From the NCBI RefSeq assembly GCF_001194135.2, contig NC_068984.1:15378607-15442606 (forward strand): a stretch of DNA of 64,000 nt, read 5' to 3'. Below the pieces are notes generated by a model. The model made no database searches. It saw only the letters and a program-made list of their open reading frames with translations, and was not told the origin of the DNA. Made by a program: the position numbers and the translations under genes. The stretch comes from Octopus bimaculoides. Taxonomy: Eukaryota. This document shows positions 32,596-62,140 of the stretch, in pieces (within the stretch, counting starts at the first letter, position 1; each line of letters starts with the position of its first letter).

Positions 32596-32772
32596 TTATC
32601 TACTTAAACTATGTGACCTAGCACGTCCACCCAAAAAGCAGGACTTTTTAAAAAATGGATCCTTCAAAGCTTCTTTTAGTGTTATTCGCGCCAGGGGATC
32701 ATATCGTAGCATCTTCCAAATCAAATCAAACAGAAGCACGTGGTCCTCATTGTTGGGCTCCATTATGTACCG
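32596..32772 (-). CDS. CLK2: CLK distal terminal exon Y2 (58 aa): [41 protein letters not shown]...RARSHSLSR*
   Basis: ttttaatccag|CGG acceptor, phase 0; second copy of subdomain XI; TAA stop. Confidence 0.92.
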   Translation of the reverse strand, partial: RYIMEPNNEDHVLLFDLIWKMLRYDPLARITLKEALKDPFFKKSCFLGGRARSHSLSR

Positions 32773-35700
32773 CTGGATTAAAAAAAAACGAAAAGTAGAC
32801 ATTATTAATGTAAGTAAATAAGCATATGGCCATACAGGCAATTTTCTGAAAATATTATTATTGAGTTTCAATATTTTGAAGAATGAAATAGAGACTACAA
32901 TAAAAAGAGAAACTGTTGTCCAAACAGATTAAATTTTATATGCAATTGTAGGATATCAAAATATAAAGGGAACTTGCATTTATTTATCAAGCTTGATATT
33001 TTAAAGAATACGTTTTACTGAATAGAGTTTTTTTTTTTTTTTCCCCCCATCATTAAGAAAGAAAAGAGAAAAGAAATTAACATGAAATATATCTTCAGAG
33101 AAGTCAAGTCATGAGGTCATAACCATTAATATTGAAGAAGAGAAGAAGAGAAAAAAGGGGATAAAATCATTCAGTTCTGGATTTGATTTGATAAACATTA
33201 TGGAAGAAACAAAGAAAAAGACAAAGAGAAAAAGAAAAGAAAAGAAAAAAGTGAAAATTATTTCAACTCTAAAATCTTGTACTCTTATAAAACCCATGTA
33301 AAAGGTTTTCTTTCTATTGCAATACAATTGTTCCTTCCTAAACAATAAACAAACACATCTTTTATCTTTTACTGGTTTCAGTCATTAGACTGTGGCCATG
33401 CTGGAGCACCACCTTGAAGAGTTTATAGACAAATGAATCAACCTCAGTGCTTATTTTTTTTAAAGCCTGGCACTTATTCTATCAGTCTCCTTTGCTGAAC
33501 TGCTAAGTAACAGGGATGTAAACATAAAAACACCGATTGTCAAGCGGTGGAGAAAGGGCAAACACAGGCACATACACAAAGGTATATGATGGGCTTCTTT
33601 CAGTTTCCATCTACCAAATCCACCCAAAAAGCAAAACTGAGGCAGACACAGGCACAAAAACCAGTGAATTGTCTAAATGGTTCCCGAAAGTTTGAAACTG
33701 AATATATGCAGCAGCCGTGGAATCAACTGGCACTGCGGATACTTAGTACTGCTTCCAAGCACGCAGTTTCACAGTGATCCTCTGACCACTGTTTTGTTTA
33801 TTTTCTTTTGTCTTACAGTTTAGTATTTATGAGATTGTATGTATTCACCATTATCTACTATGTATAATTGTAAAGCAATGGTATATTTTATTGGTAGCTA
33901 ACACAGGTGTTCATATGACTGACCAAGTTGAAATTCATCTAATGTAGTTCCTGTGCATATGCCACAGAGCCATCTCCTCTTTCTTTGGGTGGTAATCAAT
34001 TTAACGCCACTACCTGAGCAGCCCTTGATTCATTGCAAATATTTAGACCAAGCCATGCTTCCAGTAGCAGTTATCATCACCTTATGTCACTGGCACCCTC
34101 TAAATCTTCCTATAAGTAAATGACCAATCTCAACTCGCAGGACAATCCTTCTTCCTCTTTTCTAACATCTGTGGACTCTGATCCAAACATCACATCTAAT
34201 TCACAAACCATACATCCTATTCCCCATAGACAAATCTCTCAACCTATATTCAGTCAACCTAACAATGTCCCTTACCTTCATACAACTCAGCACACATGTT
34301 GTCCCCATTTGAGACAGCTACTATCCTACTACACTCGTTACCTCAAAGGTGATGGAGATAACCATAAACAACCACCTTCTCTAACACCTTGAATCTTTTC
34401 CCCTCTTTAATGAATGACAGAAATTCATAAATCCAGATCTACTGGAAACATGTCACTCATCAGGGATGGACTTGATAGGAAAAGCGAGTGGATTGCCGTG
34501 ATCTACTAAGCTAAACTGTACAAACTAACAGAACAAATCCCTTTTTTTTTTTTAACGCACAAACACACACTTGCAAAGGCTGGAATCAATTTTCTTTTGT
34601 TTTTTTAATTCAGTCAAATCTATGGAGTAAATTAAGTTGGTACATTGAAGCATTTACTGAAGTATTATTAATGCATTAATTCCAATGAGGAATCCAAATT
34701 TGTATGAGGATTCAGTTATCCCAGCTATGTACTTGCTATATTACACTGTTTAAATAGAAAACAATGACGTTTCGTTGACTCAATCAATCACAGTCATATA
34801 AAATTAAATTTAATTTTACTGGGGTCTTTTTTTCTTGGTTAAACTGTGCATCCAAATGCTAAAAAGAACAGTATCCNNNNNNNNNNNNNNNNNNNNNNNN
34901 NNNNNNNNNNNNNNNNNNNNNNNNNNNNNNNNNNNNNNNNNNNNNNNNNNNNNNNNNNNNNNNNNNNNNNNNNNNNNNNNNNNNNNNNNNNNNNNNNNNN
35001 NNNNNNNNNNNNNNNNNNNNNNNNNNNNNNNNNNNNNNNNNNNNNNNNNNNNNNNNNNNNNNNNNNNNNNNNNNNNNNNNNNNNNNNNNNNNNNNNNNNN
35101 NNNNNNNNNNNNNNNNNNNNNNNNNNNNNNNNNNNNNNNNNNNNNNNNNNNNNNNNNNNNNNNNNNNNNNNNNNNNNNNNNNNNNNNNNNNNNNNNNNNN
35201 NNNNNNNNNNNNNNNNNNNNNNNNNNNNNNNNNNNNNNNNNNNNNNNNNNNNNNNNNNNNNNNNNNNNNNNNNNNNNNNNNNNNNNNNNNNNNNNNNNNN
35301 NNNNNNNNNNNNNNNNNNNNNNNNNNNNNNNNNNNNNNNNNNNNNNNNNNNNNNNNNNNNNNNNNNNNNNNNNNNNNNNNNNNNNNNNNNNNNNNNNNNN
35401 NNNNNNNNNNNNNNNNNNNNNNNNNNNNNNNNNNNNNNNNNNNNNNNNNNNNNNNNNNNNNNNNNNNNNNNNNNNNNNNNNNNNNNNNNNNNNNNNNNNN
35501 NNNNNNNNNNNNNNNNNNNNNNNNNNNNNNNNNNNNNNNNNNNNAAAAAAAAAAAAAAAAAAAAATCTTAAATAAATAATACAAATAATCTAATACACAT
35601 AAATAAGGAAAGTTATCGCTGAACATCTCGATGTCGAGAACTTTGCTTGCTTTCCTTGGAAAACAAAACAGAAAAATTATACAATATTTATTCATAATAT

Positions 35701-38700: not shown

Positions 38701-41156
38701 ACCATCAGATCAATATGAGGGGGTTAAAGGCGTCACAGTTTGTTGACAGTTATCTATTTACAAACTGTTATTATGTCTATGACACTCAACTCCAGCCAGT
38801 CCAAGCCACTGAGCTGTATGTAGACACCATGAAGAGATACATCTCACTGCTGTAAGCAGTAAGAAGTCTGTACCCTCAAATACTCTGCCAATAGTTCCAA
38901 ACTCAAACCTCAGGCAATCTCCTGGGGCCAATAGTTCTAATCATTTATTGATACACGAATTTGATTAAAAGTTAAGATATCCAATGTAAAACTGAAGTAA
39001 ATATTATTATTATTATTATTATTATCTGTATTCTGAATTGTTACAGTAATAAAAGAAAGACAATAAATATAGTAGCAACACAAACAACTTGAAATGACAA
39101 CCTACACCCCACCCCTCCAACAGATTATTTTTCACTGTTAGTAGAGATAATTAGAGGTAATAGTGATACTAGTGGAAGAGATAGCTGCTGTCATTACCAT
39201 GAAATGTGAAGTGAAGTGAATACAAGTGGTGGGTTGGGTGAAAATGGGAGAATAACATGCTCAAGTTTAAAGTCCCATGCAACTATTAATGTTGGAGATG
39301 ATCACCTGGCAAGTAGCTGTAGCTGACATCAGATTTGCCTGGACCCTCACTCTTTGTTTTCACACAGTCACGGTCACCATGGTTTTCAGATGATAACTCA
39401 CTGCCCTGGTAACTTTTGCGCCGGTCCAGCATCCTTGGTTCCTTCGGCACGGATGGCTTGTGCTCTAGATGTGGTTGCTCTTTTAATAAGGGTTTGAAGA
39501 AAGGGTGAGCAAGTGTTTCCGCAAGAGTTATCCTGTAATGAGGCTCATACTCAAGCATCTTTTCAATGAGATCAAAGAGCTGAAGATGTTGGATCCCTTT
39601 GTCTCTTAAATAGTGCTGTAAGGAAGAAAGAGGGAGGCACACGTCACATAGAGGGGATTGGTAAAAGGTTATTGTATCTAAACTTGGTGATGTTGCCCAT
39701 TCTGCAAAGCTGTAATAGGTCAGTTTACATCAATCATTAAAAACATCCAAGCTATTTTAAATTAGTGTGACACTACCAAAATGATGAAAGCAGGCTGTTA
39801 ATAAAATTTCCCTGAAATAGCAATTGGTGTAAATAGCTTTGACAGTATTCTTTAAACACTGAGATGATATGTTCAAATTTATACATCTTAAAAGATTTCT
39901 ATTTTATTTAGAAATAAATATAAAATGGTTTTCTACAAAAATCAAGACTGACAAGAACTAAGGTATAAAAAAAAAAAATTTTACAAAAAAAAATAATAAT
40001 AATAATAATACTAATTTTACAAAGAAAAAAATAAAAGTTGAGCAGAAGTTAGCTAACTCTAAAAAACATATCACAATAAAAAATATTCTGTGAAAATCTG
40101 CTCTTTCTAATAATAGTTTTCTCAAATATTACCTTTAACTGTAATAAGAATAAATTTCTAATAAACATGTAAATTTTTAATATTCTAGATGAAAAAGAAC
40201 ATTATTTCCACCCATCCAATTTATTTATTCTTTATCTAATAGAGAAATAGCTAACATAACTAAAACTTTTGGTAGCATGTTTGCTTTCCTTGGCCGTAGC
40301 AACAGTTATCCAGGTATGATATTTTTAGAACCACTTAGAAAAGCTGCAAGATGTAATAATATCTACACACATGGTTTTGGAATTACTGATTCCTAGAGCT
40401 AGCTACTAAATACACTTGGTTACATTTGTTTTCAAGGTGTACTAAACTAATATGGAAGGAGGGAAGGTGTAAATAAGCAAATAGTATTATTTCAGTCATC
40501 AATATTTTACTATTCATGCGCACAATCACATTAGTACCTGAATATTAGTAACTTGGAATATCATTTCATCTCAACTAATACCACAACAATCAGTTTTCTT
40601 TTTTCACTTTTTATATACCTTCATCACATTGGTACAAATATGAAAACTTCAAAGGACGGACATAGCAAATGAAATATTAGTCTAGGCAAGGTTTTGTTTT
40701 CCAAGCAACATATCCACATAGTTTACAATATTTTCCCATGAAAAATGAAGGGGACATTAAAGATAGACACTGCTAATAAGCATACAAAAAGGACACACAT
40801 GCTCACTTCAAAAATGGGTTTAAATGGTTTTATGGTATGTATGTCAGTATATATAAATTGACTAGTAATAATGGCTCTACATCTTTGCTTCTTGCATTAA
40901 CTACCATAATGAAACAGAAGTGTATCTACAGAATAAGTTCATCATTCTTTTTTTTTATTATTATGAACAATGCATCTCAAATGTTACTCTGATATAATCC
41001 TTGACAGAAACACAAATGATACTTTCTCCCAAGAAAGACTCAAATGAAATTTCTACAAGAAAGGTTTAAAAAAAACAACAACAAAATAATCATGAACAGG
41101 ATGGATGGATGGATNNNNNNNNNNNNNNNNNNNNNNNNNNNNNNNNNNNNNNNNNN

Positions 41157-44100: not shown

Positions 44101-47100
44101 CAAGGTGAATATAGTGAAAATTAGAGCATAAGTAACGAGTAGAATGTTACAAACGTTAATTAGAAAAACATTCAGATTCATTATTAAAAACTGAAAGGGG
44201 CTCAATATTATGTATGCAAATATATTCAATGGATATAGATTAGCTTGATTAATGCTACAAACAATTTTAAAATCTACCTCTTGCATTAGTACAACCAACA
44301 GTCCAATTGGTTAAGGACCAAAGATTGTCTGAATAGGCCTTGAGAAATACTAGTATGTCTTAGGGGCAGAGTAAATAATAGCTCAATGTCTGTTGCAGTA
44401 AGCGGATAGTAGTTTTATTGATAACAAAACCTGTTAGATACTGGAGTAATTTCAAATCAACAAAGACAACTTTTTCTTACAATATAAAAAGGGAGGAACA
44501 ACCTATAATTCATTGGATATGAACACAAACTAGAACCAAAATGAAAGTGGATTGAGGAAGTAACTACATCCAAGAGGATTAGTTGTTGCAATAAAGACAA
44601 GGATATGATGTGTATAGATTATGCATGCTAAGAAAAGAAAAATAAAACAGGGCAAAAAAAAAAATCGAGAAGTATGCTAATATGCATATCCTCCCAGCCC
44701 ACAGAAGTATGGAAAAATGCATATTAAGTTGCTGTTATTGCTGCTGGCAGAGCTAAAAGACATGAGATAATTAAAAAGTAGAATTACTAGTCTAATTGTA
44801 TTGATACAAGTGTTACATATGTTATTAACATTAGAGCTAAAAACAATAGAAGTATTGATTGTGCAACAAGCTCTAGTGTTTTGCTCATTATATGCACTTG
44901 CACAAACACATTCTGCGGCTGTACATGTACATATATATATATATATATATANNNNNNNNNNNNNNNNNNNNNNNNNNNNNNNNNNNNNNNNNNNNNNNNN
45001 NNNNNNNNNNNNNNNNNNNNNNNNNNNNNNNNNNNNNNNNNNNNNNNNNNNNNNNNNNNNNNNNNNNNNNNNNNNNNNNNNNNNNNNNNNNNNNNNNNNN
45101 NNNNNNNNNNNNNNNNNNNNNNNNNNNNNNNNNNNNNNNNNNNNNNNNNNNNNNNNNNNNNNNNNNNNNNNNNNNNNNNNNNNNNNNNNNNNNNNNNNNN
45201 NNNNNNNNNNNNNNNNNNNNNNNNNNNNNNNNNNNNNNNNNNNNNNNNNNNNNNNNNNNNNNNNNNNNNNNNNNNNNNNNNNNNNNNNNNNNNNNNNNNN
45301 NNNNNNNNNNNNNNNNNNNNNNNNNNNNNNNNNNNNNNNNNNNNNNNNNNNNNNNNNNNNNNNNNNNNNNNNNNGTATTCTGTTTACATATTAAGTTGTT
45401 GCCTTCATTCCTAACATAAACACAAATCCTAGTGAGGTTTATAAATGACCCATGTTACTTGACTGATACCATTTTATCAGTCCCAGAAGACTCGGCAGGC
45501 TTTGTAAAGAATCATAACAATATACCACAAGGCATTTGTCTTAAACTCATCTAATTTCTGCCAATCCACTATCTGGAACAATCGAATGTTAAAAGGAGAT
45601 TTGTAAATTACAAATCCACTATGTTTACAAAAATTGTAAAATATTAACTTTGATTCCCCTCCTCCTCCTCCTCCCATAGGTTAAACACATTTTGAAAAGG
45701 AATCAGCTAAATAACTTGTTACTCACCTTAAGTGGTTTGCAATTTTCCCGAATATACCGCCCAGATGAGTTTTTTTCATCCCAGTCCAGTTTCCCATGGT
45801 AGAAATACTTGCTTTTTCTTTGGAGATAAATATGGGGAGTGTGGGGTTAGGGATTAGAAAAACAAACAAACAAACAAAGCCGTATGAGCTAATGAGAATA
45901 GCCATGCAGCATGCTACCCAAGTCAAACTACATTCAGTTCAATGGAAACAACTAATAAAAGGTAAGTTATATTAGTATTGAAACAAATTATGAATGCTGG
46001 CAGCAAAAAGAAAAGTGGTAAACTAATCAACTAAAGAGACAAAAATTTATGGGGTGGGAACTTGGGTTGTTACCAAGAGCTTGTACTAAATATGCTGGGA
46101 GATTAATAAATAACAAATTAGAAGTTTGGTCAGAAGAATAAAAATACAAACAGAACTTGCAGGCAGATTCAAGGATCCACAAAACACATGCATTGCCCCA
46201 CTGGCAACTACTACCAAATTTAAATGGCTAACTGAAGAAACAATTGAAAGGAAATTTGAACAAGCAAGTAAACAACATTAGTCCCCAGTGAAAAGATTTT
46301 AAGTGCTGAGCTTAAATAAAAAAATTGTGAATTAAGATTATTGAAAGAGTACATGGAAAACTATCTAGTCAGGAATGGATTAAAATAGAGTTAAACCAAA
46401 ATATAACTATTCTAGAAATATCAGTGTCACCTCCCAAAGAAGGCTTACAAGATAAGATTTTTACTTCTTCAGATATAACCTTAGAAAATTTTGGAAAAGA
46501 TCACCTTGAGAAAATAATTTGTATATTTTAGGACATTTTTTTTATTAAGTTGACACATAAATAAATGAAACTTGGCAATTTTGTTTATCCCCCAAAAAAC
46601 GAAGCTTGTTTTCAACGAAGAGATTTTACATTAGAAAGAGTTTAAGTTTAGAAATGTATTTATTACCTACAAGACAACACACCAAAAGTGTTGTGAACAA
46701 ATTAGTTGTTACCTGCTGGCACATTGCCCAAACATCATACACTTCAGTGGTTTCTTACAGTTGGAAAATAGTAAGTCATGCACTATAGTGCACTTATGGT
46801 AGTAGTTACAGAGAAGGCTGAGCATGTACTTACATAAAGTGGTTTACAGTTCTCCCTTACATATCTCCCAGCAGAAGTAGTCGAGTCCCAATCAAGGCGA
46901 CCATGCCAGAAGTAATTTGTTCTTAAAACAATAGGAACAAAATGACAAGTGAATTTTATTATAATTAAAGTTTACTTCAGGGTTATTATAATTTGAAAAT
47001 AAATCATCATTTATGAATTTTCTTTAAACTTGTGTTTCAAAATCAACAATGTCTTTGACTCATGTAATATTTACTCAATGTAAATTGCACAAGATGCCAC

Positions 47101-47745: not shown

Positions 47746-50700
47746 TTTAACAATAATTTACAATATTAATATTCTAAAGTTGGACTGATTCCAAGAGTTC
47801 ACTGAACTACTTTTAGAAATAAATACCTATGTATTTCTGCTGCACATCAAACATAAATATCAATTACAGGAAAATTTCTTTATGAAATTTGGACTAATTA
47901 AATTAGGGAGAAAGATAATAATAAAAAGAAACACCAATATGAAATGTCATGATACACTTTTGAAAATATAATTGCTTAACAATTAAAGTAATATATGTTG
48001 TAATAAATGTTAATGATTCATTATGCAACACCCCACCCCACCCAATATTACTGTCAAATTTAAAGTTAGAAAAAATATATTTATAAAATAATCACAGTTT
48101 ATCAATTAAAATATTATTTCACCTATTTAAGTTAGATTTTTGTTCTATAACCATCCTTTCTAATGTCCAATATTATTAACTTTAAGTCAATAAGCTTACC
48201 GAGATCTTTTTGCCATCCGATATGGTATACTGCCCAGTATCCGTTCCATCATTGCCAAATGCTCCTTATTGTCATGTGTCTAACCCAAAACAAAAAAGTA
48301 AATGTCAAAGCAGCCAATACAAGGTTAATTGTGTGTTCACACTAAATATATTTAAGACAAAATACAAAGATTAACAAGTATAATATATATTTTAAAAAAA
48401 TAACATTTTGCTAAGAAGTAGAATTAAAAAACAAAAATACATGTCAGCATGTCTATGTATAATTTCAAGAAAATATACAAAACTAAATCAATAATGTTGC
48501 CTATTCTATTGACTATAGAACAACAGTAATAGTCATAATGGTTTGCAAGAATTACAGTAAAATCAAATTCAGGATAAAATTCATATAGAGGCTGAAAAGA
48601 ATACTCGCAAAATAGCAAATAGCAAGTAAGTGTAACTTTGACAGGCAAAAAGTTTAATTAATAAACATCATACTATTATATAATTTAATAAACATTAAAA
48701 AAATAAGCATTAAAGCAATTTACCTGAAATAATGTGTATCCTGTGTATAGCTCAAACATGATACAACCTATACTCCACACATCACAGGGTTGAGACCAAC
48801 CTAATTCTAAAATTACAAAGAGAAAAATATCAGTTATGCAGAAAATTATTGCAGAGACACAGAGATATCATCTTTTTTTAATGTCTGCCTTCCATGTTGG
48901 CATACATATAAATACAAAGAAGTATTGATAGATAAATACAAATCATTGCAAGAAAAAAAATTCTTAATGTAAGGGCTGATTAAATCTAGCTTTACTTCTT
49001 ATTTAAGATCAAGGTCAGTCTTTGTATGAGACAAAGTCAGCAAAGAAAATTTCATTGAAAGGTTTCAACCAAGATTTATGGAATTTAAAACTAACATCAT
49101 TTAATGTTCGTATTCCATGCTGGCATGGGTTGGGTGGTTTGACAGAACTTGCTCCAGTGACTGCTTTGGCATGGTTTCTACAGCTACTATGACGTCCTAG
49201 CTCATCAGGCTACATTTGTTCTCAAAACCTCAAGTATACATATAGTTGATGTTCACTTCCAGTTATTGTAGCAACTTAACCCAGGTGAAGAATCTAAGTT
49301 GGTACACAGATCTCTCTCTCTCTTCAGCCAGGTAACCTTGTACTTCTTCAACAGCAAGAAACCTGTTTCTGTGTCTGTCTCACTATAGCCTTTCATCATC
49401 CGACACAAGATCACTTCCTCTTGAAAGTGTTTTTTTTTTTTTTTTTTTTTTTTTGTCTTGCAAGTACTTGGTGACCCTATCAGTGCAGGTGCTACTTAAA
49501 AGCACCCAGTCCACACTGTAAAGTGGTTGGTGTTTGGAAGGGCATCCAGCTGTAAAAACCTTGCCAAAACTGACCTTAACTGTACTTGTGCCACGTAAAA
49601 AGCACTAAGTCCACTCTGCTGAGTGGATGGTGTTAGGAAGGACAACCAGCTGTAAAATTCCTGCCAAAACAGTCACAGAAGTCCGGTGCAGGCTTCTGCC
49701 TGGCCGGCTCTTGTGAAATCATCCCACCCATGCTAGCATGGAACACGAACATTAAACAACGATGATGATGATGATGATGATGAATCACCAAAGCTGCAAT
49801 ACTTAAAACCAGGTAAATCTATCTGTTGAGAGCTAAGTGTATTGATCTCAGAAACAAGACTTACAGTTGCACTGAACTCGTCAGCAAGTTGTCCCATTTA
49901 TGCTCACAAAAAAAGGTAAATGATTCATAACAACTTTAATGCTCAAGTATCATTAGAATCATTACATCAGCATCTGGTGAATCCAGAATGTGGGCTCCAG
50001 CAGGGCAACATTTTCAATAGGGAACCAACCACATTCCAAAGTGAATGTGTATTGCTTTTACCAAACTAACTAAGTTTTATTCCAAAAGTTTCAAATCTAA
50101 ACCCATTCAAATTAAAGTAATTTCACTACTTCAACTGTAATATGGAACTTCTACTGGAGAAACCACAACACTCCAGAAAGTACAATTAAAATAACAAGCA
50201 ATAAAGACTAACACTTCATATAAGTGGGTGGTGGTGATAAAACATTTTTATATTTTCAAAATGTCCAAGACCCATTTTCCAAACTTTCACCATTTAATTC
50301 TTTTTAAGTTCTAAGTTTCTGAATGGATGGATAGAGTATCAATGATGAATCAGTCATGTACTGGCAATTGAATTGTGTCTGAAGTTGAGTTCATTTATCA
50401 AGCTCATCATTTTCGATCGATACTTCTCCAGCTGTTACAAATTAATTCCTTTTGTATCGTCTGAGAAACTATCTATAAAACTGCAATAAATGTAAACAAG
50501 GCTAGCAATTCCCAAGTAAAAGAAAACCATAATACACTTACCCAAAATAACTTCAGGAGCTCTATAATGCCTCGTTGATACAATAGTGCTGTGGTGTTCA
50601 TGATCAAATGTTGCAGATCCAAAGTCTATTAATCTTATATCTGTATTTTTTACTCTCCGCATATCTCGCCTCTAGAAAATGTAAAATACGAAACAAAGAT

Positions 50701-50802: not shown

Positions 50803-53800
50803 GATGCAGATAAAAACAATATTACCTTTTTAGCATTATATGATACTTCAAAATCGGAGTTAACGAAAAGTATGTTTTCTGGTTTCAAGTCTGTATGCGT
50901 GAGCTGGTTCTCATGGAGGACTAAAAAAGAGGGGAAAAGGCTATTTACTGTTTTGTACAAACACACAGAGATTATAACTTTATAATCAAAATAAACTAAC
51001 CATTTAATAATTCTAACCATTTTAGTTTGAACGAATTAAATATTTGCTTACTGAAATAAAGAAAAGACCCATATGGGAAAATTTTATTGTTAAATTATAA
51101 TCTAAGAATGAAAACTAATTCAATTGGTAAGATGTAAAATAAATGTATTCATCAAAGTAAAACTCCAGGAATAAGTCTACGTTAATCAAACCTTTCTCAT
51201 CAATCTGTCCTTTCTGCCACCACTACAACCGCTAGTACCCTACAGAGACACCTGGGTGCATATCCCACCCCCACCATTTCTCATCCAACTAACCTTATCT
51301 TCCCAGAACAGCAACCCTTCCTACCTATGCCTTCAACCCCGCCTTGAGCCTCAGGACTCACAAGTCCAGTTAGCTGGTTTCAATGGCACATGAGTAACTG
51401 AGATTACAATACTCTCCCTGAATGGGACGCCAGTCCATGGTAGGGGCTCAAGGCCGGCAATTTTTTTGAGAAAAGAGGAAGTCAATTACATTGACCCAGT
51501 ACTAGTCTGGTATTTTATTTTATCAGCCCCCCCCCCCCCCNNNNNNNNNNNNNNNNNNNNNNNNNNNNNNNNNNNNNNNNNNNAAGGGGATGAAAGATAA
51601 AGTTGGCCTTGGTGAGATTTGAACTCAAAATGTAGCGAACCACAAGAAATGCTTAGCATTTTGTCCAATATGGTAACAATTCAGCCAGCTCACCAATGTT
51701 TTCCCTATGGATATCAACTGACAGTTATTCAAGCTAAACAGCAATCATATCAATTTCAGTCTTGCAAAGCATTACAAAAGTCACAGATACACCTTGTTCC
51801 CCTGACTACATGAAAAATGAAAAGGTTCATGGATTATAAAAACAGAAATTTATTGAAACTTACAATTTACTGCATAGCACAACTGATAGGAGATATTTCG
51901 AACTTGATCGAGAGGATATGGATAATAAGTGTTGTCTTTCTGCAGAAGAAAAGTTTTTAAAATTGCATTAAGTAACATGTGCAGACGTATGCAGACTAAT
52001 AATATAAATCTCACATCTTAGGCATATTACCCACACCACCACCAATTAAAATTAAAAGATAAAAAAAAAACAAAAAAAATTTAAATATTAAACATAGCAA
52101 ATTAAATTTGGTAAAAGAACTCATTTTTCTGTAACTTACCAAAAAATCAAATACACTAAGACCAAGCATATCAAATGCTATACACATATGCCCATGATAA
52201 TCGAACCAATCCAGCATCCGTACACACAAACTGAAAAAGAAATTATAAATTTAAACTTACAAACTGTGTCTAGACAAAGAGAAAAAGAAGAAAAAATCCT
52301 TATGCAATAATCCTATTCACTCCCCAGACCTTTATTTCAAAAGTTTTTGGAAAATTTTACATTTCAGATTCAACTCTTTCATATTTATGTATGCACATGC
52401 AAACAAGTTGCAATGTTTCCTGCATGAATGCAACGCATGAACTGCATGTTTAAGACATAATTGAGCATAAATAAATTAAATAATAATATAAATTTTACAT
52501 TTTGTATGGGACTGTTAAAAGGAGAGTATATACATACTGTATGTATTCTGTTTACAGCTTTGATTTTTAAAATATGCTCTGACATAAGTAGCAGGGAGTT
52601 TACCATGATGCATAATGCATCTATGTACAAAGAGAAGCTGAAGGTTCACCTCTGGTTAAAATCTAACTTTAAACAGTTACAAAAAAAAATAATAATAAAA
52701 TGTGTGTGTGTGTGTGTGCGCGTGTACGTGTGCATATACATACACACATATACACACACATGCAAATTGAGTTGATGCCAATCCATTAAATACAAGACTT
52801 GTATTGATTTATTCTATATTGTTCAGCTGACATTTTACTTATGGAATCAGATTAATGGTCTGGGTTGAACTGTGACTTGTTTTTTTTGTTTTTTTTTAAA
52901 TATTAAAATTACTAATAGATAATAAAACTAGGATTAAAGAAAAAAAAACGTATCCCCACCTTGTACCAACTAATTCTTCCAGCTGTTTCTCTTTCAGTTT
53001 ACCTAAGTTTACTACAATTACACCAATACTCTGCTACTTGGAATTTTCTACCTTAATCTTACTTCAAGCTATTCTCCTCCTGCTATGACTTGCTTTGCCA
53101 GAGAGATGAAGAAAGTCACATATATCCCCCATACACCACCACCCCACTACTAATCTATCTTGAACATCATTTTCCCTTCAAACAGTAATTTTCTAAATGA
53201 AACACAAATTTAGTCATTACCTTGCAGTGTATTTGGATACACACACACACACACACACACANNNNNNNNNNNNNNNNNNNNNNNNNNNNNNNNNNNNNNN
53301 NNNNNNNNNNNNNNNNNNNNNNNNNNNNNNNNNNNNNNNNNNNNNNNNNNNNNNNNNNNNNNNNNNNNNNNNNNNNNNNNNNNNNNNNNNNNNNNNNNNN
53401 NNNNNNNNNNNNNNNNNNNNNNNNNNNNNNNNNNNNNNNNNNNNNNNNNNNNNNNNNNNNNNNNNNNNNNNNNNNNNNNNNNNNNNNNNNNNNNNNNNNN
53501 NNNNNNNNNNNNNNNNNNNNNNNNNNNNNNNNNNNNNNNNNNNNNNNNNNNNNNGACGAAACTCTCATAAAATACATGTCCCATAAGAAAATTCTTTTGG
53601 AAAAATGAGCAGAAAAATCTCATAATGAAAAGCTCTTATTAATAACAATCACCAACAACACTTCAATGGTTGTGTGGTCATTCTCAATGTGCTAAAAATA
53701 GCAACCATCTCTTTAATCACACCATACTGCCTTAAGAAAGAAGGACACACTGGGCAACATAGTTCTAGATATACAAAATGATGACTGAAATGCCAGACCA

Positions 53801-56800
53801 CAACAACATCTCTTGAACTGAATACCAGTAATACCATGAGGATAACATGTTCAGGAAATTACAAGCTGATTAATCACATCAGCGTAACTGGTACTGTAGA
53901 ACATGCTAACACTAAAAATGAATGAGAACATTGATATAATTTCATCTCTTTGGAAATGAACAGAAAATAATACATCCTGTGGACACATCCATCAACATCA
54001 GGCTGTTTAGTTGAAGAAAAATGATGGAGACTGGTTATCCAGGAGGCTAAGAATTAGCAGCTAAATCACTCTCAAATTCCACCATACCACCTTAGACAAC
54101 ACATTAAACAGTATGGTCCTAGGTACACTGTGCATAGAAAACAATAGGATAGTTATGTTTAGAATGCTTCAATCTTGATTGAGTAGATTTTTGATCATAA
54201 GCCTTCTCAATCAAAGCTGACTCGGGGGTCAAACAACAAGATAAACATCCTATATAACAAGGAAACTAGTATACTCAATAAATACCCAGATAGAGCCCAT
54301 TCAAGAATATATAATACTAAACTGTCTACTTTTAACATTTCTAGAACTGAAATCCAAACTATGAAGGAATTAATTCTTCGTTCAAGTCTTCACAATCAAC
54401 ACATTTTGTTTTCACACACTGACAAATTATCAAATAATTTTATTGACAATAAAAATCATTAGAAGACAAAAACTTTTAAATTTCATAAACATTCTTCATT
54501 GGGTGGTAAAATAATTTATCCCAGCCTAATCTACTGCAATCAAATTATAGTTTTATATATGTGAACATTTAACTGAATTTTCAATTTATTTTCCACTAAT
54601 TAATGCAGAGAAGCCATTCATTTAGATAAAAAAAAATATATGACAGAAAGCTATCAAGCATGGTTGTGCAGTTAAGAGCGTCACTTCATAGCCACATGTT
54701 TCCAGGTTTGACCCACTGTTCAACACTTTGAACAGAATTACTTCTAGCTTCAGGTTAACCAATGCACTAGGAGTGAAATTTGGTGGGTGGAAACTGCAGA
54801 AGTTGTAGGTGTATGTAATTGCATGTGGGTTGCTTGAGTGACAAGCCAACACTGCTTGTCAGAGCCAAAGATAATTGTAGATTATTCTAGACTTGCTGAT
54901 AAGTATTGTTGATATAAAGTCAAGCATACAAAACTTTTATGTATGAGGAAATCATCTGCCTTACCTACATGCAATTATACCAACCTCTACATACAACTAA
55001 TGCATCTTTTTTGCAAGGAAAAAAAAAAACAAATTACAAATGTGTACATCAGTGCAGGTACCATGTGGTATTTATATCCACCTTTAGTGAGTTTAACTCA
55101 ATAGGTGAATTTAGATGTTTAAATAAAGACATCTATAAAAGAAGTACAAGAATAAGTAAGGACATTAATATAATTGACAAAAACCAATAAAGTGCCCTAG
55201 AATGGTCGCAGTTTAAAGACTGAAACCAGTAAAAGAATAATCTGGATGACATACTAACCAATATTTTTATACTAGAGACCCCACATAAAATTTCATTGTT
55301 CATGCACTTTTAATCAACTCAAAATCCAGAGAATGGATCACATTGTATGATCATCATGATTAATCCCATAAAACTGCTTGTTTTATCAGAAGGAGGAGGA
55401 AAAGCAAGGAATGTACTTAATTTTGAAATATTAAATAATTGGAAGAGAATATTAAAATGTTACTAAGGCAAGGAACAGAAAAACATGCAATATCCACAAA
55501 TGTATTTACTAATTATTGAAATCAAAATTAAGGTACAAAAAATTATTTTAATGTTGTATTGCGTATAATTCCCCCATGCTAAATGTAATTGATATAGACA
55601 TTTCAATACACCCATAAAAGGATGTATTAAGAAAGGGAGTAATCTTAAACATATATCCCTCATTGTAATATGCAGTAAAATGTTGATAAAATATTTCAAG
55701 AGAAGAGAGAGAAAATAGGCCACAATTCACCAAAACTTACTTGATTTCAACTTCATTTATATACTTTTTTTTTTTTTTTTAATTCACACAAAATATATAT
55801 TTCAATCTGTTCTAATATTAGAATTCTAAGTTTGTAGAAATACACAAGAAACTAAATAACACTTTGTTAACACCATTCAAGAAGATATATTACAAAATAA
55901 TTGTTTGAATTAGTCTCATAGAATATTAGTACAACAGGTAAATAATTCCTGTGAGATATGGCTGGAAATGGGTAATGGAGTGTGATTGGCAGCATTAACA
56001 CAACCATTTGCATCAGCATAGAACTACTTACGGCCCACGAGAGCGTTGCCTGGAATATCTTGAACGTCGGCTTGCAAAAAAACAAAAATTCAAAGCTTTT
56101 TCACAAACAAAATTAATTGCAGCACATGCATTTATGGAAAGCTTGTGAAGAGAGTGACTGAGTAAATTTAATGTCCATAACTTGGAGAAAAGTTGGAGAA
56201 ACTAGTTGTAAGAGTAACTGCTTTATTAGAACACGTACCAATAATTTAAAAGATTATTAATTTAAAACCTAAAATGAGAGTTAGAAAATTAACCTTAGTA
56301 AATGGAGACCTACATGAATGTTGCAAAGTGGGTGAAATCTCAACAATTTAATCATCTTTAAACATCTTGAGAATTTTTGCTATTTGCTGTGTAAATGTTC
56401 AAAATGATAATTATATACAAATTATCTATAACCAAATATTAATTTAACTAAGATCAGAATTTGATTCCCATTCCTTAACACCATTAATTATTCTGAAAAA
56501 GGCATGAACAAAATGTTCTTCATCAGCTACTCAATCTTTAGGACTTTATACATTGAAGAAATCAATTATCAAAAATAGATGTCAGTATTTTGTTTATTTA
56601 CTTTTTAAATACAATCTTACTAAGTCAAAACAAGGGAAAATAAGACATCTAACAACATTTACTATTAAAATGAGTTAGTTACGTTCATATAAAAAGGAAA
56701 GAGTAATCTAGCTCAAATTTCTAGACAAGAGGAAGAGATGGTGGTGGTGGCGGCGAGGGGGGGGGACTAAAAATTATATGAAGTGTAAGGACTAAGGGAA

Positions 56801-58212
56801 GTACTTGTCACTATCTCCTATTATGGTGAGTAATATGTGTACAGCTTAGTTCCCTCTGCCAGCCTAAATATATTGTATATGGAGAGGGGATAGAGGCACT
56901 TAGCAGGAGAGAACTGAAGTAGCTGTACAGCTTGTTGAAAATGGCTCTGGTGGTAAAAACTGCTTAGACAACGAGAATATTTATGTTATCAGAAAATTAA
57001 CTGAAATAACCTTCAATCATGTGGCCGATGTAGTTAGGCTTAGTAACCTATTAGCTAAGTTCATTACAGTATTACAAAAGAATACAGACAAGATAACAAG
57101 GCAAAGGAAAAATACTCTCTATAAATAGGTACTACTAGAATGAATAATTGAAACATTGGTTCTTTAAAGCTGGTAGTATATCAAATCACAGCAAAAAGAG
57201 AAAAACCTAAGAAAAATAAACAAAATATTCACTACATAAAACCAAAATTGNNNNNNNNNNNNNNNNNNNNNNNNNNNNNNNNNNNNNNNNNNNNNNNNNN
57301 NNNNNNNNNNNNNNNNNNNNTTTTTTTTTTTCTAATGGCATATCTCATGGGAGGGAGAATCGATATGCAGATTTCTCGGTACATCTTTACTTTCCATCAG
57401 GTAATAAACTTTCTAATTTCCAAGTATATTGCATTAAATTTTATGAAATTATTGTTATATAAATTTAAATAACAAAGCAGGTTTTTTGATGATTCTACAT
57501 TCATTAAATTTTTTTTTTTAATGTTTAGCTAGAAATTTAGAGATTGCAACTTAATGAATGGTAGTCAGCAAAGTTTCCATCCTATTGTTATTATCTGATA
57601 CAAAAGCAAACATAAATGTGTAAAAGTTTCTTTCACAAACATCTGTAACAGAACTCAATAAACATAATAAATTCTTCAGGGATTAGCATGTATTACTAAC
57701 AATTATGCAGGGTAAGTCAGTAGATAATATTAAAAAATCAAAATTACAAAGGAAGCATAATTATGAGAACAATTCACACATGTTTGAGGATTACAAACAA
57801 GAGAGTACTCAATACATGTAACAGAGTTTAAATGGAAAGGCTAAGGTGTAACTACTCAATGCTTATTCATTTTCAGTTGTTGCATATGTTGTTATTTTTT
57901 TACTCACTTGAATTATCACAATTAACAACAGAATGAATCATAACTATATATAGCTTGGCTTTTTGCCTGGTCTCCAAGAACCCATATATATTAAAGGGAG
58001 GAGAACCGAATGCAGAATGCATGGTACCAAATGGATACCCCCAAAGCATTGTGCCAATGCTCTAACAATCCACCAGTTCATCACCCTAAATTGCTGCTAT
58101 ATATTTAACGAGCCCAGAAGTATGGATGGCAACGGTGACCTGGTTGGGATTTGAACTCAGAGGGCAGAAGGCCAGAACAAACAGTGATTCAAAGAACTCT
58201 GTGAATTCAGCA

Positions 58213-58264
<52 letters not shown>

Positions 58265-59076
58265 CCTTATCCCTTTACCTAGAATCACTGCTCTACTCTA
58301 TCTCCTATCCCTCCTTGATTATAGGGGCCACTTTAGCCTTGAAACTACAAGGTGATCTTCACTAGTCCAGTACCATGAAAAAAATTCTATACAATGTCAA
58401 GTGGTTGGTGTTAGGAAGGGNNNNNNNNNNNNNNNNNNNNNNNNNNNNNNNNNNNNNNNNNNNNNNNNNNNNNNNNNNNNNNNNNNTATATATATATATA
58501 TATATAGCTTCTTCTTATATAGTATAATCTTACTTAGTATATAGTATCAGTTACCACACTAATAAAACTATTTAATAAACAATTTAATAAACTATTTAAT
58601 AAACTATTTAATAAACAATAAAATCATTATTTGAGAAGCCATTAACTCAGGCAATTCTAAAATTCATAGTGTGAGTGTGAAAGAGAGAGAAAAGAACTCA
58701 GTTATAAGAAAGGCAGTATTTAAGTAAAAAGTTTATGGTATTGTGAAGTGATGCTCATAAAATGCAGAGTAAACAGAATTACAGAGATGAGCATTTAAAA
58801 AAATACAAAAAAAAATGTATATGAAACAAAAACAATGCACTTGTACATTATTTTTCACACTTTGCTATTTAGCCTCATCTTTACTTCTAAACATTTTATC
58901 ACATTATTACAAGTAGATTGTTACAAAGCAAGTATCTTACTATACATCCTGACCTTTTGTGACCTAAATAGACAGCCTGACTATCAGTACTTTGTGCATT
59001 GTTATAGGAATTTTGTTACGAAAGAGATTCTGATTCTTTGGTTAAAGGATGTAACTTAAGTTTAGAAACAAAATAT

Positions 59077-59114
<38 letters not shown>

Positions 59115-62100
59115 CATACATATATATATACATACATACATATATGTGTGTGTGTGTGTGTGTAGTAAGAATCATTCTTTGGCAGATGAAACTTTTTCAA
59201 TTTCCAATGAAATAATTACATTTCGAGAATAACAACACATATGCCCATGCCAGCATAGTTAAATAGTTTATTGTGCAAATGTGATTCTGGGTTTGACCTC
59301 CACTACACAGCAGTTTTGGCAAGTGACTTGTATGCAAATTCAACTTATAACAGAAAGACATCTATGAAATTTGGCAGAATGAAAACGGGCACAATCCTGC
59401 AGCATGTGTATATGCACATGTTGTCTACTTGTCCTGTAATTTAGCGATTTAAGAAAAAACCTCTGAAGGTGATATTCCAGCATGAGTAAAACAAGTTAAA
59501 GAATATACACATTAGATAAGCAAAATCTTGGCCTGTTTGAAGAACTGTTTTTTATTAAAGATTATAATTTCTCTCTCTCATGTGTACAAGCAAGTGGAAA
59601 TGCATTTTTAGAAACTACCAAGGCTTCCTTTTGTAAGCATACAATAGTTTTGCAAAACTGGGAATTGACAAAAGAGATCCTATGCTGCAAACATACACTC
59701 GCACAACCTTTAATTTTTTCAATAAAAATCAATAGAAAATAGCAAAATGTACGGGAGTTATTAAAACTGAAGCACAAAATCGTTTAAAGATATGTTTGAA
59801 AACCTACAAAGTGCAAAGCAACAACCCTAGCAAACAATAGCAGGAAGAAGGGGAAATTTTAATGAGTTTAGGCTTAGCTTAAATTAAAAAAAGGAAGTAA
59901 AACGCCCTTTGATGCTCATCTAATTTCTGTAACAATAAGCAAATGAGAAAGAAATATCAGCTGTGCTGAATAGTGAGTATAAGACCTGGTATCTTTTATC
60001 TCAATAAACTAAGTAGAATTAAGTGTTTTGGTTTGAGAAACAACACATCACATGACTCAAGATCTAATAGACAGATAACAGTGTTCCATCTACTGAGTAA
60101 AGATAGTAGCTCATTAAATTAAATAAAAATAGGCTTGGCTATACAGCCATGAACTATACAAGTAATGACTGCTTGTCTACTGTTTCTTACAGATATTGGC
60201 TGCAAAGTAGAATTGTAGAAACTATCAAGCAAGAACAGTTCAAATGGTGCAGTATTTGTATCTAAAGCTATTATAAAGAGCATAAAATTGAGAGTAAACA
60301 AATGACCAACAAGCTGAATTATTATCCACCGGTATCTGGTCACACATGTTTTTATGTCAAAGACAATTAACTCTCAATGGTCCAAACTAATAATCTGCAA
60401 ATAGCTACCAAAAATGAAGTATACATAATTCACTGAAGGAAACAAGAGGCACTTCAATTGACAGTCGTATCGTGATTAACAAGCAGCACTATTTTCAAAT
60501 TTCTTTCATAAGCAAACTATGGGAGATCCAAGAGAAATATCCTTTAATTTGACATCTTGAAAACTTAAATCAGCTGCAGCAATAGTGGTAGTTAAGAAAA
60601 TGTATATCAATATATGCTCTGCTGCAACAAACTTCAAACTGTGTCAGCAATGTATATTGCAAATAAACAGGTTCACTTTCACAGTCATGAATTAAGAAAG
60701 TGAATTTGTAAATGGTATCTATACAAACAAAGCTACACATACACAAGAAACAAAATACTTGTGTAGATATTATCAAAGAAGCAATTACCAAAATAAATTC
60801 CTAAATTATCCTTAAGGTTATACCTCTTATATACACACATGATAAAAAAAATTTGTGAGCTAAAATGGAAAATAGTCGATGAAAAAATTCAGAAGTTCAG
60901 CAATTGCAAATCTATTTTTATGAACATTATATCAACTACATTGCTACATGACTATTGAACTGTGTCAACTTTTACAATAACAATAGCTCTTCATTTACAT
61001 AACAGAGCATTTCCAATTTCTTCCTTCTTGCTCTGAGCCAGCTAAGAATACTTGTAACATTTAACTATACATCAATAACAACCATAATGAAATACTAACA
61101 CCATAGGGTGGAAAATTTAACAAAATGACATTATAGTTGGTGCTGTTTAGTATCAAATCAGCCTTGGTCAAGTAGAGTTACAGTCAAAGGCATTCAAGCC
61201 ATCATCATTCAGCCTTTAACATCAAGGACAGCATCATTCAATATTATCCTGGTTTCACATCTTGGCATTTTGCTTTAAGGCAATTTGGTCATTTCTTCTA
61301 GACAGTCAAGTAGCTACATAAAGACTCTCCAATTATCAGATGAGCTAGATAATTCAATTGTAACTGAACATTTATTATTCTATTTTCTCGCGTTTCCTGA
61401 CACTCCTCAAGCTTGATTAATTCAATGCAATGTGAATAAACAAGCATTACAGTTGACAATAAATGCTAAAGGGTTTTTAAAAAAGGATAAATAGTGGAAG
61501 CTAGTCTGCTAATATCCAATCAGCATTGTTCATGCTCAATGATCCTGCAGTTATCTGATAGTTTACAAATACTTTCACTCAGAAAAACATAATTCACCAA
61601 TACAATTAAGGAAGGACTCTTTAGTCTAGCTTCAGCAACACAATGAAAAACAAGATACATTTTTCTGCACCGTTTATAGATTGTTGCAACATATCAGAAT
61701 GAGGGAGATTCTTATGGAACTGAATGAAAATGCTTTTATGACACAAAATAGAGAAGATATCTTCATTTAATATATCCAACTTTTTTTTTCCCCCAGCTAA
61801 AAAAGCATTTCTACAGCCAAAAATAAAATAAAATAGAGCGAATTTTAGCCAAAGACCATAACAAGAAATGGTCTTATTTTCATGTGAGAAATATAAATGA
61901 AGTGCAGGAAAGAAAAAGTTGTGCAAAGAATAATGGGCGTTTAAGCATAAACTTTTCATAAATAGCAAATAATAAACAAGAAGACCATGCTAACATTTAA
62001 AATCGAACTTTGTTGCTGCAAAAAGAGAAAGATATTAGATATGAAGACAATTCCCTTAGTCTAAAGAACCTACCTCGCAACATCCTTCACCTCAACACAT

Positions 62101-62140
62101 TTCCCAAAGGTGCCTTCACCAAGGGTCTGAATAATTTCAT
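32596..62140 (-). CDS. CLK2: CLK/Doa-family (LAMMER) dual-specificity kinase, multi-exon, 5' part outside window
   Basis: Spliced exons give [53 protein letters not shown] and RITL..HPFF/DPFF in the correct order, with matching phases and GT-AG sites. The symbol is nominal; this is probably the invertebrate CLK/Doa orthologue. Confidence 0.97.
36460..36650 (-). mobile_element. RTE 3'-end copy with (GAT)n tail in the Y1-Y2 intron
   Basis: Reverse complement of ...CATGCTAGCATGGAAAGCGGACGTTAAACGATGATG. Confidence 0.85.
38944..38949 (-). terminator. Candidate poly(A) signal for the Y1 isoform
   Basis: AATAAA on the minus strand ~340 nt after the Y1 stop. Confidence 0.45.
39286..39615 (-). CDS. 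CLK2: CLK proximal terminal exon Y1 (109 aa): [40 protein letters not shown]...GDHLQH*
   Basis: tccttacag|CAC acceptor, phase 0; kinase subdomain XI motif; TAA at 39286-39288. Confidence 0.92.
   Translation of the reverse strand, partial: HYLRDKGIQHLQLFDLIEKMLEYEPHYRITLAETLAHPFFKPLLKEQPHLEHKPSVPKEPRMLDRRKSYQGSELSSENHGDRDCVKTKSEGPGKSDVSYSYLPGDHLQH
41687..41840 (+). mobile_element. RTE 3'-end copy with (GAT)n tail in the X2-Y1 intron
   Basis: GGCGTTAGGAAGGGCATCCAGCTGTAGAAAC...GTTAAACGATGATG. Further copies at ~27501-27648(-), ~28923-29065(+), ~49095-49170(-) and ~49480-49782(+). Confidence 0.85.
45727..45817 (-). CDS. CLK2: CLK alternative exon X2 (paralogue of X1): [30 protein letters not shown]
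   Basis: ctccaaag|A...AAG|gtgagt; 91 nt, phase 2 to 0; ctaat/ctaac branch-like motifs ~35-45 nt upstream. Confidence 0.92.
46834..46921 (-). CDS. CLK2: CLK alternative exon X1: [29 protein letters not shown]
   Basis: ttttaag|A...TAT|gtaagt; 88 nt, phase 2 to 0. Confidence 0.93.
48200..48279 (-). CDS. CLK2: CLK exon, LAMMER motif: [26 protein letters not shown](R)
   Basis: ggttag|ACA...TCTCG|gtaagc; 80 nt, phase 0 to 2. Confidence 0.97.
48724..48806 (-). CDS. CLK2: CLK exon: [28 protein letters not shown]
   Basis: ttttag|AA...CAG|gtaaa; 83 nt, phase 1 to 0. Confidence 0.97.
50542..50671 (-). CDS. CLK2: CLK exon, DFG/activation segment: [43 protein letters not shown]
   Basis: ttctag|AGG...TTGG|gtaagt; 130 nt, phase 0 to 1. 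Confidence 0.97.
50826..50920 (-). CDS. CLK2: CLK exon, catalytic loop: (F)[31 protein letters not shown]
   Basis: ttttag|TC...AAG|gtaat; 95 nt, phase 1 to 0. Confidence 0.97.
51864..51939 (-). CDS. CLK2: CLK exon: [25 protein letters not shown]
   Basis: ctgcag|AAAGAC...AATT|gtaagt; 76 nt, phase 0 to 1. Confidence 0.95.
52140..52230 (-). CDS. CLK2: CLK exon: [30 protein letters not shown]
   Basis: tttcag|...TTG|gtaagt; 91 nt, phase 2 to 0. Confidence 0.97.
53262..53554. other. Assembly gap that may hide the missing VALKIIKN/alphaC exon (alternatives 57251-57320, 58421-58487)
   Basis: No exon encoding VALK..KYREAAKLE was found between 52231 and 62073 on manual reading. Confidence 0.5.
56032..56070 (-). 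CDS. CLK2: Putative 39-nt cassette microexon encoding [12 protein letters not shown]
   Basis: ttttttttgcaag|CCGACGTTCAAGATATTCCAGGCAACGCTCTCGTGGGCC|gtaagt. The phase-2 frame required by the flanking exons gives an RS-rich peptide with no stop. Confidence 0.75.
62074..62140 (-). CDS. CLK2: CLK exon, Gly-rich loop: (Y)[21 protein letters not shown](S/R)
   Basis: tttcag|ATGAAATT...GCGAG|gtaggt; 67 nt, phase 1 to 2. Confidence 0.95.

Follow-up and report, generated by a model that had tools for sequence, protein, structure and literature searches.

Kinases of the CLK family set the phosphorylation of SR proteins, and hence splice-site choice genome-wide. Human CLK1-4 and Drosophila Doa belong to the same kinase family, and in both the arginine/serine-rich (RS) region lies N-terminal to the kinase domain. 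In the SRPKs, a constitutive, non-catalytic spacer of about 250 residues is inserted between the two lobes and governs localisation, and CLK1 undergoes alternative splicing of its own transcript, in which skipping of exon 4 truncates the kinase. Insertions in the catalytic domain of CLKs have been described as well, namely a MAPK-like insert with helix alphaH and a beta7/beta8 hairpin, in a study that also mentions the SRPK1 insertion (PMC2667211). Here we describe a stretch of 64,000 nucleotides (nt) from Octopus bimaculoides (contig NC_068984.1, positions 15,378,607 to 15,442,606; hereafter the window), which holds part of a CLK2/Doa gene with an optional exon of 39 nt that would write a substrate-type RS motif into the N-lobe of the kinase's own catalytic domain. 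We regard it as highly probable that this is a genuine, alternatively used coding exon under selection, and we moderately favour the fuller reading of a cephalopod-conserved cassette exon that adds an auxiliary RS handle and is controlled by conserved intronic blocks.

The 39-nt exon and its gene

The exon occupies positions 56070..56032 of the minus strand, bounded by uuuuugcaAG and GUAAGU (donor 56031..56026), in the context ...aaugcaugugcugcaauuaauuuuguuugugaaaaagcuuugaauuuuuguuuuuuugcaAG/CCGACGUUCAAGAUAUUCCAGGCAACGCUCUCGUGGGCC/GUAAGUaguu..., and is read as C CGA CGU UCA AGA UAU UCC AGG CAA CGC UCU CGU GGG CC. It follows the constitutive exon for the Gly-rich loop and strands beta1-beta2 (62140..62074, minus strand, 67 nt), whose first codon completes a Y and whose end, ...GUU GCG AG/guaggu, leaves two nucleotides of a codon, such that AG plus C gives the S that opens the insert, and CC plus any nucleotide gives the P that closes it. 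The 39 nt are thereby split into 1 + 36 + 2 nt, which matches the phases of the neighbouring exons, keeps the frame and is free of stops. Arginine or serine accounts for 9 of the 12 residues, with 6 overlapping RS/SR dipeptides in an insert of 13-14 residues in total. With its length, canonical AG/GU borders and preserved frame the exon fits a definition of alternative micro-exons as those of 51 nt or less (PMC4317164), and it is a micro-exon by this definition, not by the 27-nt one. The preliminary description of this DNA had read here a frame-preserving exon with a gtaagt donor, placed downstream of the Gly-loop exon so that the RS peptide falls within the catalytic N-lobe; coordinates, reading and placement all proved correct, on the minus strand and in the phase set by the Gly-loop exon.

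A scan for chance occurrences covered all in-phase open segments of 9-60 nt bounded by AG and GTAAGT on both strands of the 64 kilobases (kb). There were 19 such segments, and an Arg plus Ser content of at least 50% was found only in the 39-nt exon and in a shorter version nested within it. The GTAAGT donor itself is unremarkable in the CLK2 gene, being present in 5 of the 12 mapped exons. Internal AGs at 56049 and 56058 of the minus strand would give in-frame versions of 18 nt (QRSRG) and 27 nt (YSRQRSRG) with the same donor, and neither the 18-nt nor the 27-nt version is used in any of the gene models.

The window, AT-rich DNA of an animal, is interrupted by 14 runs of N; exons were mapped in it by tblastn with the kinase domains of CLK1 and Doa. 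The nearest relatives by structure search are CLK1-4, with human CLK2 (3NR9) the best match (E = 2.8e-163) and CLK3, CLK4 and CLK1 also among the top PDB matches. The top protein-database matches of the concatenated translation are named CLK2 or Doa; identity to Octopus CLK2 is 86-89%, a value depressed because the beta3/alphaC exon is missing from the translation. The LAMMER signature in helix alphaG is encoded in the exon at 48279..48200 (minus strand, 80 nt), and the HTD that replaces HRD in the catalytic loop is encoded by that at 50920..50826 (minus strand, 95 nt), both being family features as defined previously (PMC2667211). The C-terminal residues PRMLDRRK are those of O. bimaculoides entries, those of O. 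sinensis and O. vulgaris being PRIVDRRK; therefore the window holds most of the kinase-domain part of the O. bimaculoides CLK2/Doa (LAMMER kinase) orthologue, on the minus strand. The N-terminal Arg/Ser-rich region lies outside the window and is found in the full-length O. bimaculoides and O. sinensis proteins (MPKSRRRRRSPSRDS...RSYKRKKYRRSYRHHR...).

The next mapped exon after the small one begins LCVRMLDWF (52230..52140, minus strand, 91 nt), with one nucleotide (U) before UUG UGU and a Y at the junction. The exon for beta3 and alphaC, with its VALK motif, was not found in the window by tblastn with human CLK1, Drosophila Doa or short VALK peptides, or by a regular-expression scan of the minus strand. 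Orthologous loci were compared in O. sinensis (L003), Argonauta hians (L004), the clam Mactra antiquata (L005) and the sea slug Elysia chlorotica (L006). The small exon has orthologues of 39 nt, both RS-coding, in O. sinensis (L003:66591-66629) and Argonauta (L004:54165-54203), and in the chromosome-scale assemblies of both species the order of exons is Gly-loop, 39-nt RS, a VALK exon of 117 nt (...DPEGK) and LCVRML. In the window the VALK exon, including the catalytic lysine, is hidden by an assembly gap of 293 N at 53262..53554, the flanks of which align to L003:69133 and L003:69409, on either side of the VALK exon at L003:69243-69356. The VALK exon thus follows the small exon, inside the gap, and the site of the insert is therefore the beta2-beta3 turn and not the alphaC-beta4 loop, which settles a choice that the preliminary description had left between the two. 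The O. bimaculoides RefSeq protein XP_014781440.2 carries the exact peptide fused directly to LCVRMLDWF; its lack of beta3 and the catalytic lysine is an annotation artefact that arises only through the gap, and not biology.

These observations also bear on whether the exon might belong to the N-terminal RS region and have been misplaced into kinase-domain introns by a gappy assembly. The 14 gaps in the window and the demonstrable error in XP_014781440.2, where the small exon is joined to LCVRML without beta3, are what such an artefact would lead one to expect, but the order of the Gly-loop, small and VALK exons is the same in the two chromosome-scale assemblies and in a contiguous mRNA contig (described below), and the N-terminal RS region of the Octopus protein holds no copy of the insert peptide. 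Genomic order and mRNA together refute a misplacement in practice, and we consider it exceedingly improbable. The position of the exon is shared, at the homologous site, by identical or homologous exons in three other cephalopod sequences.

Use, conservation and age of the exon

Inclusion and skipping are both represented in gene models of O. sinensis, as befits the optional exon of a CLK/LAMMER gene that had been proposed. Among the cluster members listed, the exact peptide stands after VKDVA in the O. sinensis RefSeq isoforms X1, X2, X6, X7, X8 and X14, and the exon is skipped in O. sinensis X4 and X11, in all O. vulgaris isoforms listed and in the Argonauta hians model. A homologous RS insert, RSRSRYSKSRGS, is carried between the same two exons by a protein (P0004) encoded in two near-identical contigs of 2.6 kb (L001 and L002) from a marine metatranscriptome (Joint Genome Institute sample 3300018952). 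These contigs lack introns and have an A-rich 3' end, and are therefore taken as assembled mRNAs. The homologue is of 33 nt, A UCA CGA UCA AGA UAU UCC AAA UCC AGA GGA UC, and its core UCAAGAUAUUCCA is identical to that of Octopus. P0004 is 85% identical to Octopus CLK2, compared with about 71% for bivalves, and has an alternative N-terminus in common with Octopus isoforms (MKVDVLTAYKEWANMPTSSTDS), which argues for a cephalopod source outside the octopods, by inference probably a squid or cuttlefish. A protein search with the N-lobe plus insert returned no further insert-bearing sequences, only short, non-cephalopod fragments.

Between O. bimaculoides and Argonauta, 10 of the 39 positions of the exon differ. 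Read in the RS frame, the changed codons comprise five synonymous ones (CGA>CGG, CGU>CGG, UCC>UCA, CGC>CGU, UCU>UCA) and two non-synonymous ones, whereas each of the other two frames has no synonymous and seven altering changed codons. Over the first 10 codons the protein is identical, with five synonymous changes against no amino-acid change. This pattern of codon change is that of a translated, functionally constrained exon, as purifying selection would leave it. The splice sites are likewise kept in Argonauta (AG and GUAAGU), the GUAAGU being identical in O. sinensis also, and the upstream Argonauta exon ends in CG and its VALK exon starts with A, so that both inclusion and skipping (which gives R) are in frame. 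Identity of the intron between O. bimaculoides and O. sinensis was tried as a measure of conservation and set aside as uninformative, with a background of 94% against 96-98.5% at the exon. The preliminary description had tied its reading to conservation of the 39-nt sequence or its splice sites in cephalopods; both are kept in Argonauta, and the squid-like mRNA has the 33-nt homologue.

It could still be argued that the exon is a neutral expansion of a tolerant turn, exonised by chance, with inclusion and skipping as splicing noise. LAMMER kinases differ in loop length at this site, conservation of the cephalopod exon does not extend to its 3' end, and an unrelated small exon in the same intron of Mactra (below) suggests that small exons are easily gained there. 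However, the exon, its frame and its splice sites have been kept in three cephalopod lineages, the first 10 codons show five synonymous and no non-synonymous changes, the intronic flanks are strongly conserved, and the exon is single copy and not repeat-derived. Neutral gain and noise are thus very unlikely as the full account of this exon, which we continue to read as a selected coding exon.

The position of the intron is common to Mactra antiquata and Elysia chlorotica, where the introns are of 7 and 5 kb. Neither of these orthologous introns holds an in-phase, AG/GU-bounded, RS-coding segment, nor does either have a blastn match to the conserved island around the octopus exon; conservation, which was to be sought in other molluscs too, was thus without a counterpart in the clam and the sea slug. 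On this limited sample of outgroups, one clam and one sea slug, the exon looks like a cephalopod-specific innovation. Origin from a repeat or transposon was ruled out, as the island that contains the exon (56178-55817) is single copy. The Mactra antiquata model has an unrelated in-phase exon of 18 nt in the orthologous intron (U CCC AGU GUA CAA AUG AG, PSVQM; L005:12714-12731), by which gene-model evidence the intron between the Gly-loop and beta3 is suggested as a recurrent site of small-exon gain.

The insert in the kinase fold and the control of its inclusion

In an alignment with human CLK2 (3NR9), the insert opens a gap within the DHRRGGAR turn, between VVQCVD (beta2) and VALKII (beta3). 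An AlphaFold model of P0004, made from an alignment of 56 sequences, has a mean predicted local distance difference test score (pLDDT) of 66, owing to the disordered N-terminus; in it the insert lies between the strands at 163-170 and 188-194, with a pLDDT of 68-77 compared with 83-89 in the neighbouring strands. In this model the insert protrudes as a less confidently predicted loop from the tip of the N-lobe's beta2-beta3 hairpin; when the exon is skipped, an ordinary short beta2-beta3 turn results. Loop length, taken as the distance between the Gly motif and the (A/V)xK motif, could be measured in about 230 CLK/Doa sequences; nearly all have 13-15 residues, a few environmental sequences 18-20, and one (P0172) 62. 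Variable loops occur across eukaryotes (for example P0172, P0144, P0207 and P0211), so the beta2-beta3 turn of LAMMER kinases is generally permissive for insertions; P0172 is a fragment with a Ser-rich 62-residue insert that has short runs of Arg and no RS repeats, and among the sequences measured an RS-like peptide at this loop was found only in Octopus isoforms and P0004.

CLK2, CLK3 and DOA prefer Arg at P-3 and P+1 (PMC2667211), and a suitable serine is present in RQRSR of Octopus, RQRS of Argonauta and RSRSR of the squid-like sequence. We propose that the insert would be a solvent-exposed, flexible and phosphorylatable Arg/Ser motif, acting as an auxiliary RS handle on a catalytic domain whose catalysis is unchanged. 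Most likely it would serve as a phosphorylation target, of CLK itself in trans or of SRPK-type kinases, and once phosphorylated would tune contacts with SR proteins or RS-binding partners and so influence localisation. The insert might add to the N-terminal RS region or, in isoforms with an alternative RS-less N-terminus (MKVDVL...), partly substitute for it. In gene models the exon occurs together with either N-terminus, RS-rich or RS-less (MKVDVL...), and the exon-bearing mRNA has the RS-less one, which is compatible with a compensating role without demonstrating it. The handle mechanism is put forward tentatively, as somewhat less than evenly probable.

Over the approximately 10 kb from the Gly-loop exon to LCVRML, O. 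bimaculoides and Argonauta can be aligned in only about five islands (62226-61893, 59012-58834, 56927-56661, 56178-55817 and 55490-55451), the intron being otherwise mostly unalignable. The first surrounds the Gly-loop exon, and the fourth, of 362 nt, extends from about 110 nt before the small exon to about 215 nt after it, the downstream flank being at 55817..56025 of the minus strand (AGUUCUAUGCUGAUGCAAAUGGUUGUGUU...). The upstream block at 56101..56130 (minus strand; UGCAUGUGCUGCAAUUAAUUUUGUUUGUGA) includes UGCAUG at 56130-56125 and a branch-point-like UUAAU at 56116-56112, and is near-invariant between Octopus and Argonauta in the form AAUGCAUGUG(C/A)UGCAAUUAAUU(U/G)UGUUUGUGAAA, the UGCAUG included. 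The last island (55451..55490, minus strand) opens with a second UGCAUG at 55489-55484 and is 87.5% identical to Argonauta over 40 nt. The islands at 58834-59012 and 56661-56927 of the minus strand, which are 78% and 73% identical to Argonauta, lie in the same large intron; no coding use is annotated for them, and they could represent regulatory elements or exons missing from the annotation, such as non-productive ones. When the exon was folded as RNA together with its conserved flanks, no unusually stable structure resulted (z = +0.42 for Octopus and -1.44 for Argonauta), and stable structure therefore does not explain the conservation of the flanks.

UGCAUG is the Rbfox motif to which the preliminary description had drawn attention. 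TGCATG occurs 17 times in about 60 kb of the minus strand (0.28 per kb), and six times between the two constitutive exons; only the two copies nearest the small exon are conserved, both being kept in O. sinensis and Argonauta. The proximal one is 55-60 nt upstream of the 3' splice site and the other 542 nt downstream of the 5' splice site. By the position rule for Rbfox, a site upstream of an exon leads to repression and one downstream to activation of inclusion; the conserved downstream copy would therefore fit activation. The motif was thus present, correctly located and conserved, but its side relative to the exon had not been stated, and it lies upstream, where repression is predicted. Enrichment of RBFOX motifs beside alternative micro-exons (51 nt or less) has been reported, and the exons that RBFOX enhances frequently belong to this size class (PMC4317164). 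Rbfox-type control of the exon is a reasonable hypothesis from these motifs, and inclusion is probably set by the flanking conserved intronic blocks, including the two UGCAUG elements.

The 3' splice region suggested a different regulator. The U-rich tract cuuugaauuuuuguuuuuuUGCaAG (56071..56095, minus strand) has its AG at 56072-56071 and, one base before it, a UGC at 56076-56074, a position that had been correctly reported; the next upstream AG is at 56097-56096. The exon might accordingly be a neural microexon dependent on SRRM4/eMIC, in which a UGC between pyrimidine tract and AG recruits the Srrm234-eMIC and inclusion is on only in neurons. A UGC one base before the AG and after a U-rich tract, together with a consensus GUAAGU donor, is among the features listed for SRRM3/4- or eMIC-dependent exons (bioRxiv 10.1101/2024.09.17.613571; PMC8797185), the eMIC domain is reported to be ancestral to bilaterians (PMC8797185), and conserved intron flanks are typical of regulated microexons. 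The published signature, however, comprises a long AG-exclusion zone and a UCUC tract in addition to a UGC close to the 3' splice site (PMC8797185; bioRxiv 10.1101/2024.09.17.613571), whereas here no more than about 24 nt are free of AG, and the U-rich tract is interrupted by G and lacks UCUC. O. bimaculoides and O. sinensis both have the UGC beside the AG (UUUUUGCAAG), but in Argonauta it is replaced by UAC (UUACAAG) despite conservation of the exon and of the AG and U-tract, another UGC lying about 33 nt upstream of the AG. UGC is in any case neither strictly necessary nor sufficient for eMIC dependence (bioRxiv 10.1101/2024.09.17.613571), and 39 nt is outside the class of 3-27 nt that is most eMIC-dependent. 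The UGC on which the SRRM4/eMIC signal was first proposed is in place in the two Octopus species and replaced in Argonauta, and the long AG-exclusion zone and the UCUC tract are absent; an eMIC-dependent neural exon is unlikely, and a contribution of SRRM/eMIC to inclusion is possible, though weakly supported. We consider preferential use in neural tissue doubtful.

The exon itself holds a further candidate signal. A core of 11-13 nt, UCAAGAUAUUC(C)A, is invariant in Octopus, Argonauta and the squid-like mRNA, including three synonymous third positions, whereas neighbouring codons have changed synonymously; this hints at overlapping constraint at the level of RNA, for example an exonic enhancer. 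Since CLK genes are known for self-regulated splicing, the exon might be an autoregulatory sensor, its inclusion following the phosphorylation of SR proteins that would bind the purine-containing core UCAAGAUAUUC, so that CLK activity would feed back on the kinase's own domain as with CLK1 exon 4. Small exons are also generally enhancer-dependent (PMC4317164). However, three synonymous sites carry the whole of this argument, and both products are full-length kinases, with no obvious on/off output like that of the truncated CLK1 isoform. A sensor exon is distinctly unlikely by comparison with the conserved cassette bearing an RS handle that we favour.

Several points weigh against this favoured reading as well. 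The alternative status of the exon is based on gene models and one assembled mRNA species. Its last three codons vary (RG+P in Octopus, QS+S in Argonauta, RG+S in the squid-like mRNA), as does its length (39 or 33 nt), and constraint is therefore confined to the RSRYS core and a general Arg/Ser character. An insert of 13 residues with 6 overlapping RS/SR dipeptides is far below a true RS domain; such domains extend over tens of residues dominated by RS/SR, and the insert is an RS-like motif. The isoform models do not link the exon exclusively to the RS-less N-terminus. The proximal UGCAUG, being upstream, predicts repression rather than neural activation. Finally, kinases in general have their phospho-acceptor site far from the beta2-beta3 turn, and a role as a pseudosubstrate in cis was therefore judged unlikely from general kinase geometry.

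The boldest version of events, in which Rbfox and/or Srrm234-eMIC switch the exon on in cephalopod neurons and the resulting self-phosphorylated RS loop re-targets the kinase or changes its choice of substrate, we consider quite improbable. If true, it would imply re-targeting to speckles, SR-protein partners or transportin-SR, a splicing kinase re-tuned by a lineage-specific neural microexon, and a contribution to the unusual way in which the cephalopod nervous system is regulated at the level of RNA.

Further features of the window and comparison with known systems

The remaining kinase-domain exons, all on the minus strand, are one beginning KDNTYY (51939..51864, 76 nt), one encoding RRDMRRVK...DFG...APEVIL (50671..50542, 130 nt) and one between the APEVIL and LAMMER exons (48806..48724, 83 nt). 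Two further alternative exons (46921..46834, 88 nt, and 45817..45727, 91 nt) form a mutually exclusive pair, inclusion of both causing a frame shift. The pair encodes the MAPK-like insert that is specific to CLKs, contains helix alphaH and covers the docking groove of SRPK type (PMC2667211); both versions are used in Octopus isoforms. Presence of the pair in Argonauta, Mactra and Elysia as well, the first exon of Elysia being 97% identical to that of Octopus, indicates that it is ancient in molluscs. The last coding exon, for helix alphaI and the tail, is tandemly duplicated (39615..39306, 310 nt, and 32772..32596, 177 nt, minus strand). When the first copy is included, an internal donor (CCAG/gugauc) joins it to the second copy in another frame; when it is skipped, the second copy ends ...RARSHSLSR*, an ending typical of other molluscs. 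The squid-like mRNA has three copies of the last exon in series (L001:1441-2113), Elysia has both kinds of copy, and in Mactra one copy was matched, closer to the first. The window also contains a repeat of about 320 bp resembling a short interspersed element, at 28569-28886 and about nine other places (for example 4098-4427, 22593-22907, 23972-24265 and 33391-33626) in both orientations, the translations of which recur in the list of open reading frames (...SQGFGRPEAIVEDTCPRCHAVGLNPEPCG...).

Full-text literature searches found no paper describing the 39-nt exon, and a 2026 preprint on tissue-specific splicing includes O. bimaculoides with no mention of CLK. The exon is already present in public gene models; as a lineage-specific alternative micro-exon by which the N-lobe of a CLK gains an RS-like loop, it is undescribed in the literature found. 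An optional exon of this kind, kept across deeply diverged cephalopods from octopods to a non-octopod, would be a compact and experimentally tractable way to change the location or binding of a kinase, and a clean system in which to study the effect of a minimal RS motif detached from the N-terminal RS region. Should inclusion prove to be regulated by tissue, the exon would offer a clear example of a core splicing regulator acted on by a lineage-specific microexon; should inclusion be the same everywhere and the two isoforms behave alike, it would be one more tolerated variant of a surface loop.

Compared with neural microexons dependent on SRRM4/Srrm234-eMIC or RBFOX, the octopus exon is similar in its 39 nt being a multiple of three, in coding for a surface loop, in its conserved flanks, in the UGC next to the AG of the Octopus species and in the conserved UGCAUG nearby. 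It differs from them in exceeding the classic 3-27 nt, in the loss of the UGC in Argonauta, in its short AG-free zone, in the lack of UCUC and in having the proximal UGCAUG upstream. The known insertions in CLK catalytic domains are constitutive, located in the C-lobe and not Arg/Ser-rich, whereas the octopus insert is optional, RS-like and located in the beta2-beta3 turn of the N-lobe. With the SRPK1 spacer and CLK1 exon 4 it has in common that an SR-protein kinase is modulated by an insertion or by splicing of its own transcript. The SRPK spacer, however, is a constitutive element of about 250 residues between the lobes, compared with 13 optional residues here, and whereas skipping of CLK1 exon 4 leaves a truncated kinase, inclusion or skipping of the octopus exon gives two complete kinases that differ by 13 residues.

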